Of a DNA stretch of 64,000 nt, positions 23,409 through 23,548 are shown piece by piece. The number at the start of each line of letters is the position of its first letter. The first letter of the stretch is position 1. The DNA is taken from assembly GCF_028641065.1 (NCBI RefSeq), contig NC_073391.1, positions 23,994,001 through 24,058,000 of the forward strand, written 5' to 3'. Below the pieces are notes generated by a model that was not told where the DNA came from, did not search any database, and saw nothing but the letters and a program-made list of their open reading frames with translations. Both the position numbers and the translations under genes were made by a program. This stretch comes from Leucoraja erinacea (Eukaryota).

Positions 23409-23548
23409 TCTTCTTCTTCTTTCATGTGGCGTGCACAGCCTAAAGTTGTTGGACAACTTGTTCTATTTGATCTTCCGTTTGTGCACGTTGAGTTGATTGC
23501 ATTAGTCGAAACAGGGCGGACCACGTGAAGGTTGCAATCTTCCACACC
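23409..23548 (-). mobile_element. ~140-bp non-autonomous retroelement (Vingi/Ingi-like), ribozyme head and (GAA)n tail
   Basis: Discrete insertion in the right arm of the palindrome with a short ACT duplication; ends TGTGCACGCCACATGAAAGAAGAAGAAG. Confidence 0.8.
23495..23548 (-). ncRNA. Minimal HDV-like (CPEB3-type) self-cleaving ribozyme candidate
   Basis: GGTGTGG AA GATTGCA ACC TTCACGT GGT CCGCCCT G TTTCGA CTAA TGCAATC parses as P1, J1/2, P2, P3, L3, P3', P1', P1.1', short P4, J4/2, P2'. Confidence 0.8.

Follow-up and report, generated by a model that had tools for sequence, protein, structure and literature searches.

Positions 23409-23548, on the minus strand, of a 64,000-nucleotide stretch of DNA from Leucoraja erinacea (NCBI RefSeq assembly GCF_028641065.1, contig NC_073391.1, positions 23,994,001 to 24,058,000; this whole stretch is the window referred to below) hold one slightly damaged copy of a very abundant 140-base retroposon, whose first 54 bases can fold like a stripped-down hepatitis-delta/CPEB3-type self-cleaving RNA. 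Public RNA data from one single-cell library show molecules of the family that start at the predicted cut site, although cleavage itself is inferred. The element was first picked out in an initial annotation made from the sequence alone, and that observation is confirmed, since every letter it described is present. The accompanying interpretation, a promoterless ribozyme-SINE that cuts itself out of host read-through transcripts and is copied by a Vingi/Ingi-like reverse transcriptase, is supported only in part. The evidence agrees with a short, non-coding, very abundant insertion that has a microsatellite tail and no Pol III boxes and that begins at base 1 of an HDV-type fold, but nothing in the analysis bears on a Vingi/Ingi-like partner, and excision from read-through transcripts remains an inference. 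The features of the element are collected in the table below, in which element position p corresponds to window coordinate 23549 - p.

Features of the element and its surroundings, in window coordinates. X24 is a bulk oligo-dT RNA run (raw reads, organism A), X22 a single-cell RNA run (raw reads, organism A), X1 DNA contigs of organism A and X5 DNA contigs of organism C.
Coordinates	Strand	Element positions	Feature	Observations
23495..23548	-	1-54	HDV-type, P4-less predicted ribozyme fold at the head of the element	Descriptor hit; weak full-length alignment to Rfam RF02682 covers exactly these coordinates
23542..23548	-	1-7	P1 5' strand; base 1 (23548) is the predicted cut site	G1.U36 and U5.G32 wobbles, four G-C pairs and one U3 x C34 mismatch (T at 23546); pairing letter instead at 23546 in 335/340 and 365/370 reads (X24), 221/227 and 128/129 reads (X22), 240234/244428 of DNA depth (X1) and 554106/563043 of depth (X5)
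23540..23541	-		J1/2 (AA); first base polymorphic in the family	Variant at 23541 in 313/725 and 285/748 reads (X24), 249/417 and 823/1650 reads (X22) and 490291/845993 of DNA depth (X1)
23533..23539	-	10-16	P2 5' strand	7 of 7 Watson-Crick pairs with 23495-23501; also in the minimum-free-energy fold
23520..23532	-	17-29	P3 (3 bp; 23532-23530 against 23522-23520) enclosing the 7-base L3 loop (23523-23529)	P3 3 of 3 pairs; L3 heptamer at element positions 20-26
23513..23519	-	30-36	P1 3' strand	
23506..23512	-	37-43	Single G (23512, candidate P1.1 partner) and a 6-base linker (23511-23506) in place of P4	At most one pair can form in the linker
23502..23505	-	44-47	J4/2 (CTAA), candidate catalytic C at 23505; second base polymorphic (T or G)	Variant at 23504 in 308/874 and 303/949 reads (X24), 189/479 and 866/2045 reads (X22) and 484517/1403636 of DNA depth (X1); none at 23505 among the variants listed
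23495..23501	-	48-54	P2 3' strand	In the minimum-free-energy fold
23430..23487	-		3' domain: outer 8-bp stem enclosing an inner 7-bp stem with a 3-base loop; candidate recognition site for a partner reverse transcriptase	Both stems in the minimum-free-energy fold
23407..23423	-		(GAA)n tail	(CTT)5 reported by TRF on the + strand at 23407-23421; only (GAA)4 run in the window
23549..23551	-		Candidate target-site duplication, upstream copy (AGT)	Same three letters at 23406-23408; too short to be proof
23183..23624			Host hairpin-type inverted repeat (approximate limits) interrupted by the element	Joints that skip 144-147 bases (23406-23409 to 23554-23557) in DNA contigs and RNA reads, that is, host-repeat copies without the insert

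The element is a roughly 142-base insertion in one arm of the host hairpin repeat. The arms of the repeat match as 23224-23257/23554-23587 and 23262-23325/23344-23407, which leaves 4 bases between the blocks in one arm and 146 in the other. A MAFFT alignment of the two arms placed the large gap badly, and these inverted-repeat blocks were relied upon instead. AGT, or AGTG, stands on both sides, a possible target-site duplication of only 3-4 bases, and from this copy alone the 5' edge is therefore fixed only to within 1 base.

The pairings described in the initial annotation were confirmed by script, and the P1/P2 crossing gives the nested double-pseudoknot order of an HDV-like ribozyme. P1 has 6 of 7 pairs in this copy and 7 of 7 with the family majority letter. 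The C that begins J4/2, the position of the catalytic C in such ribozymes, is followed by TAA. Only one G is available to pair with a C of L3 in a P1.1 helix. The proposed P4, T-TTCG-A, is a single pair and not a helix, so that the fold is effectively P4-less.

The fold by itself is not beyond chance. A loose HDV-type descriptor (P1 of 7 bp with at most one mismatch, P2 of at least 5 bp, P3 of 3 bp, L3 of 6-8 bases, a G, and J4/2 of the form CNAA) finds two loci in the window, this one and an AT-rich one at 34450-34564, whereas twenty dinucleotide shuffles average 2.75 loci. When P2 is required to be at least 7 bp, the shuffles average 0.35 against 1 observed. The folding energy of the 140 bases is ordinary (z = -0.56, with 52 of 200 shuffles at least as good). 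In a permissive Rfam scan of 23350-23620, the only match is to RF02682, a bacterial HDV-like ribozyme, at 11.7 bits and E 9.7 against a gathering score of 44; this weak alignment does span the full model, with the same helices. The CPEB3 and HDV models (RF00622 and RF00094) give no match at E up to 10, and a gathering-level scan of the whole window finds only a tRNA.

What lifts the finding above chance is the coincidence of the fold with the insertion edge, the specific L3 heptamer, and read data for the family. The heptamer occurs 5 times in the window on both strands, and only here inside a fold; the four other occurrences (6728, 7348 and 7552 on the + strand, 40451 on the - strand) have no surrounding fold. 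It is identical to the L3 heptamer in a mouse Cpeb3 ribozyme primer that starts 18 nt from the cleavage site, and so lies at the same distance from the cut site (PMC10919898). The number of chance folds carrying one given heptamer is expected to be about 2.75 x 1/3 x 4^-7, or roughly 6e-5 per window.

Family data were obtained by aligning 23250-23700 with the four public runs at 85% likeness. Summed contig word depth over the element is 0.55-2.5 million in X1 and 1.1-5.1 million in X5, whereas the contigs of this very locus have depth 20.6 (X1 record 8, 0 differences over 23520-23700) and 44.8 (X5 record 16). Summed depth is not a copy number, but as an order of magnitude the ratio indicates 10^4-10^5 copy-equivalents in both organisms. 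Depth is as high over the ribozyme (2.3-2.5 million at 23506-23537) as over the 3' domain (1.8-2.3 million at 23426-23457), so most copies keep the head and are not generally 5'-truncated. At 23546, 98-99% of family reads and of DNA depth carry the letter that restores the third P1 pair, and the mismatch is therefore private to this copy. Only two other variants are listed inside the 54 bases, at 23541 (about 38-60% in the four runs) and at 23504 (about 29-42%), and both lie in joining regions. No stem position is among the variants listed, which is suggestive only. Stem conservation is judged from per-site frequencies alone. A blastn search with word size 7 found no other copy in the window, and an exact 21-base stretch of the ribozyme core gave 0 matches in metagenome contigs and 0 in viral contigs.

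Evidence for a defined RNA 5' end comes from X22, in which 1566 reads carry letters beyond 23545 with a shared consensus (agreement 0.78). The reverse complement of this consensus is the 5' SMART adapter ending in GAATGGG (PMC8408944), followed by three more G's, and the next aligned base (23545) is again a G. Seven G's equal three from the adapter plus family bases 1-4, and the cDNAs therefore end at base 1, give or take one base. For comparison, 2067 X22 reads cover 23541 and 356 run on through 23546. Strand invasion of the GGG-ended switch oligonucleotide at the G run would leave three or four G's, not seven. About half of the X22 reads at 23541 carry each of two variants, so several loci contribute. 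The DNA copies end at the same place, in that among the 16 pieces listed of 173,937 aligned, X1 records 5 and 7 and X5 record 14 stop at 23549 with more contig beyond. However, a screen for positions at which many molecules begin or end returned none in any run, and the adapter junction is seen in only one run. X24 neither supports nor contradicts it, because the six rows listed for that run each hold at least 2335 reads and total depth at that place is only 1473. X22 reads are 4-7 times more frequent in the element's sense (560-2508 against 174-585 per bin), but the host repeat also shows a strand bias, so this is weak evidence. The unique flank of this locus (23602-23697) has zero RNA depth in both RNA runs, and the RNA evidence therefore concerns the family and not this copy.

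Four linked-looking variants are far commoner in RNA than in DNA. 23475 C>A is found in 731/1778 sense and 1/180 antisense reads of X22 and in 256/399189 of X1 DNA depth; 23477 G>T in 723/1778, 0/181 and 128/396330, respectively; 23488 T>C in 891/1829, 83/261 and 8528/446401; and a GA insertion behind 23478 in 656/2043 X22 reads (strands not split) and 45/540106 of X1 depth. In X24 these variants make up about 12-29% of reads. A subfamily rare in DNA thus supplies 40-50% of the sense reads in X22, and a few source copies therefore dominate the RNA. This fits a master-gene picture, but it also means that the G1 ends may come largely from a few loci.

The best explanation, held with moderate confidence, is that this is an old, slightly decayed copy of a non-coding, non-autonomous, promoterless retroposon family of non-LTR type that trims its own 5' end, with members made up of the predicted P4-less ribozyme fold, a stem-loop 3' domain and a (GAA)n tail. 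In this view, a copy is transcribed as part of a longer RNA from an outside promoter, the ribozyme cuts immediately 5' of G1 so that the RNA begins exactly at the first base of the element, and a LINE-encoded reverse transcriptase recognizes the 3' stem-loop and tail and copies the RNA into new sites by target-primed reverse transcription. The analysis shows the insertion, the very high copy number in two organisms, a head that can adopt the HDV-type fold with pairing intact in the family (on the variants listed), RNA 5' ends at base 1 in one library, and the lack of a Pol III-type head. The outside promoter, self-cleavage of read-through transcripts, recognition by a LINE reverse transcriptase and target-primed reverse transcription are inferred. 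With regard to the head, there is no tRNA, 7SL or 5S match in Rfam at E up to 10, and the best matches to A-box and B-box consensus motifs have 3 mismatches, the commonest value in 500 shuffles. No partner LINE was found in the window: its only reverse transcriptase ORF (32400-33563, RVT_1, E 3.6e-22) is followed by an (ATT)n tail and shares nothing with the element, and was rejected as the partner; nothing else in the window shares the 3' domain. With its damaged P1 and a flank that shows no RNA, the present copy is probably dead; its value is as one more dated insertion and as a natural P1 mutant for comparison.

The rival that survives best, although it is considered unlikely, is that the RNA starts at G1 because an internal promoter, Pol II or an unconventional Pol III type, initiates there, the HDV-like fold being vestigial, inherited from a LINE 5' end, or of only secondary importance. 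RNA 5' ends at G1 cannot tell initiation from cleavage, since template switching works on capped RNAs too, and in L1Tc and NARTc the same first 77 bases (Pr77) are both a promoter and a ribozyme (PMC3383444). The RNA-enriched subfamily is also as expected for a few transcribed source genes. Against this model, no A or B box scores better than in shuffles, no tRNA, 7SL or 5S similarity exists at the threshold used, the stems show no listed polymorphism while two joining bases vary at 32-58%, and the L3 heptamer is identical to that of an active mammalian ribozyme. Less likely still is an ordinary LINE-dependent short retroposon in which the HDV-like drawing is a chance fold with no function. 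The descriptor counts, the Rfam E-value, the ordinary folding energy, the lack of P4 and a P1.1 of a single pair all fit this reading. However, a chance fold would have to begin at the first base of the insertion and at the RNA 5' end, carry the exact Cpeb3 L3 heptamer, and have its one mismatch repaired in 98-99% of family reads. A library artefact, either strand invasion at the element's initial G run, the classic site for it, or one over-amplified molecule, such that the family's RNA would have no defined 5' end, is very improbable given the seven G's, the several contributing loci and the coincident DNA ends, even though only one run shows the junction and no pile-up of starts was flagged.

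The closest systems in working principle are the R2 SIDEs (Short Internally Deleted Elements) of Drosophila, non-autonomous non-LTR elements in which a 5' self-cleaving HDV-like ribozyme is joined to a LINE 3' end and cleavage of a co-transcript gives the exact 5' end (PMC3414825). SIDEs are rare, insert site-specifically in rDNA and have a known parent, R2, whereas the present family is dispersed at high copy in a vertebrate, with a P4-less fold, a (GAA)n tail and no identified parent. Next are the L1Tc/ingi-clade elements of trypanosomatids and their short derivatives (NARTc, SIDER), in which an HDV-like ribozyme, the Pr77 hallmark, occupies the first bases of both autonomous and non-autonomous retroposons, is widely dispersed, and releases the element RNA from co-transcripts (PMC4035085). 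Pr77 is 77 bases long and doubles as an internal promoter; no promoter is known for the present element, and its host is a vertebrate. The mammalian CPEB3 ribozyme has the same nested double-pseudoknot plan and the identical L3 heptamer in the same register, but it is a single-copy intronic ribozyme with a real P4. The present element is a dispersed repeat without P4, sitting inside another repeat and not in the CPEB3 gene, and on this basis and its failure to match the Rfam CPEB3 model it is placed with HDV-type ribozymes by inferred mode of action and is not a member of the CPEB3 family. Minimal HDV-like ribozymes and theta ribozymes of metagenomes and gut phages also lack the P4 domain (PMC10879173), but they occur in microbial and phage DNA, often next to tRNAs, whereas this fold heads a vertebrate retroposon.

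HDV-like ribozymes trim the 5' ends of some LINEs and of a few rare short derivatives such as R2 SIDEs and NARTc/SIDER. No paper describing an element like the present one in cartilaginous fishes or other vertebrates was found, the papers that mention both ribozyme and skate being irrelevant by title, although the search did not extend to Dfam, Repbase or supplementary repeat libraries of skate or shark genome papers, which could hold this family. If the preferred reading is correct, a family of this size in a vertebrate would show that a ribozyme can replace a promoter as the head of a highly successful SINE-like element, and it would place tens of thousands of potential RNA-cutting sites in host transcripts. 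At 54 bases, the ribozyme would be among the smallest natural eukaryotic HDV-type ribozymes, in line with the compactness remarked on in the initial annotation. The family would also give a concrete, testable candidate for the origin of the mammalian CPEB3 ribozyme. A bolder possibility, which is doubtful on present evidence but would be of great interest, is that a whole class of vertebrate retroposons with tens of thousands of copies owes its defined 5' end to a P4-less CPEB3-type ribozyme rather than to a promoter. The supposedly mammal-only CPEB3 ribozyme would then be a domesticated relic of an ancient relative of such elements, and the identical L3 heptamer would be a trace of common descent rather than convergence.

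Outside the ribozyme fold, the listed family variants fall in the hairpin loop of the 3' domain (23450), in its internal loop (23475-23477), in the linker (23488-23491) and just before the tail (23422-23426).

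The RNA derived from the family is dominated by a subfamily that is rare in DNA. This subfamily is marked by three substitutions (23475 C>A, 23477 G>T and 23488 T>C) and by the insertion of GA behind 23478. It makes up at most 2% of DNA depth, but it accounts for 32-49% of the reads counted for these variants in the single-cell RNA run X22 (sense reads for the three substitutions, all reads for the insertion) and for about 12-29% of the reads in the bulk oligo-dT RNA run X24. This disparity suggests that a few source copies are strongly expressed.

The host of the insertion, a hairpin-type inverted repeat, is itself extremely abundant. 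Its summed word depth reaches 25.7 million in the DNA contigs of organism A (run X1) and 52.7 million in those of organism C (run X5), in both cases at 23378-23393. The repeat is also heavily represented in RNA, with many joints of the "goes back" and "opposite strands" types; for example, the joint from 23408 to 23346 is carried by 326 + 523 reads in X24.

An open reading frame of 387 aa carries a reverse-transcriptase domain (RVT_1, E 3.6e-22), and an (ATT)11.7 run lies about 160 bases downstream of it, at 33725-33759. This is probably the 3' part of a LINE, with a tail type different from that of the element studied. In addition, an AT-rich stretch satisfies the loose HDV-type descriptor with a P2 of 5-6 bp and many A-T and G-T pairs. 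This stretch is taken for a chance hit, as the shuffled sequences predict.

The remaining features are a tRNA gene, which looks intact and scores 56.9 bits in Rfam, two GC-rich tandem arrays built from a related 38-base unit, and two long homopolymer runs. The second array is overlapped by an open reading frame of 254 aa, for which the Pfam search returned no match.

Additional features of the window (window coordinates; strand where assigned)
Coordinates	Strand	Feature
18369-18440	-	Intact-looking tRNA gene
23183-23624		Host hairpin-type inverted repeat
23475-23491		Region of the variants marking the RNA-dominant, DNA-rare subfamily
25502-25537		Homopolymer run, C x 36
28765-28952		GC-rich tandem array, 38-base unit, 4.9 copies
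32400-33759	+	Reverse-transcriptase ORF and downstream (ATT)n; probable 3' part of a LINE
34450-34564	+	AT-rich hit to the loose HDV-type descriptor, presumed chance
41726-41747		Homopolymer run, G x 22
47321-48085		254-aa ORF overlapping the second tandem array
47860-48208		GC-rich tandem array, related 38-base unit, about 5.3 copies
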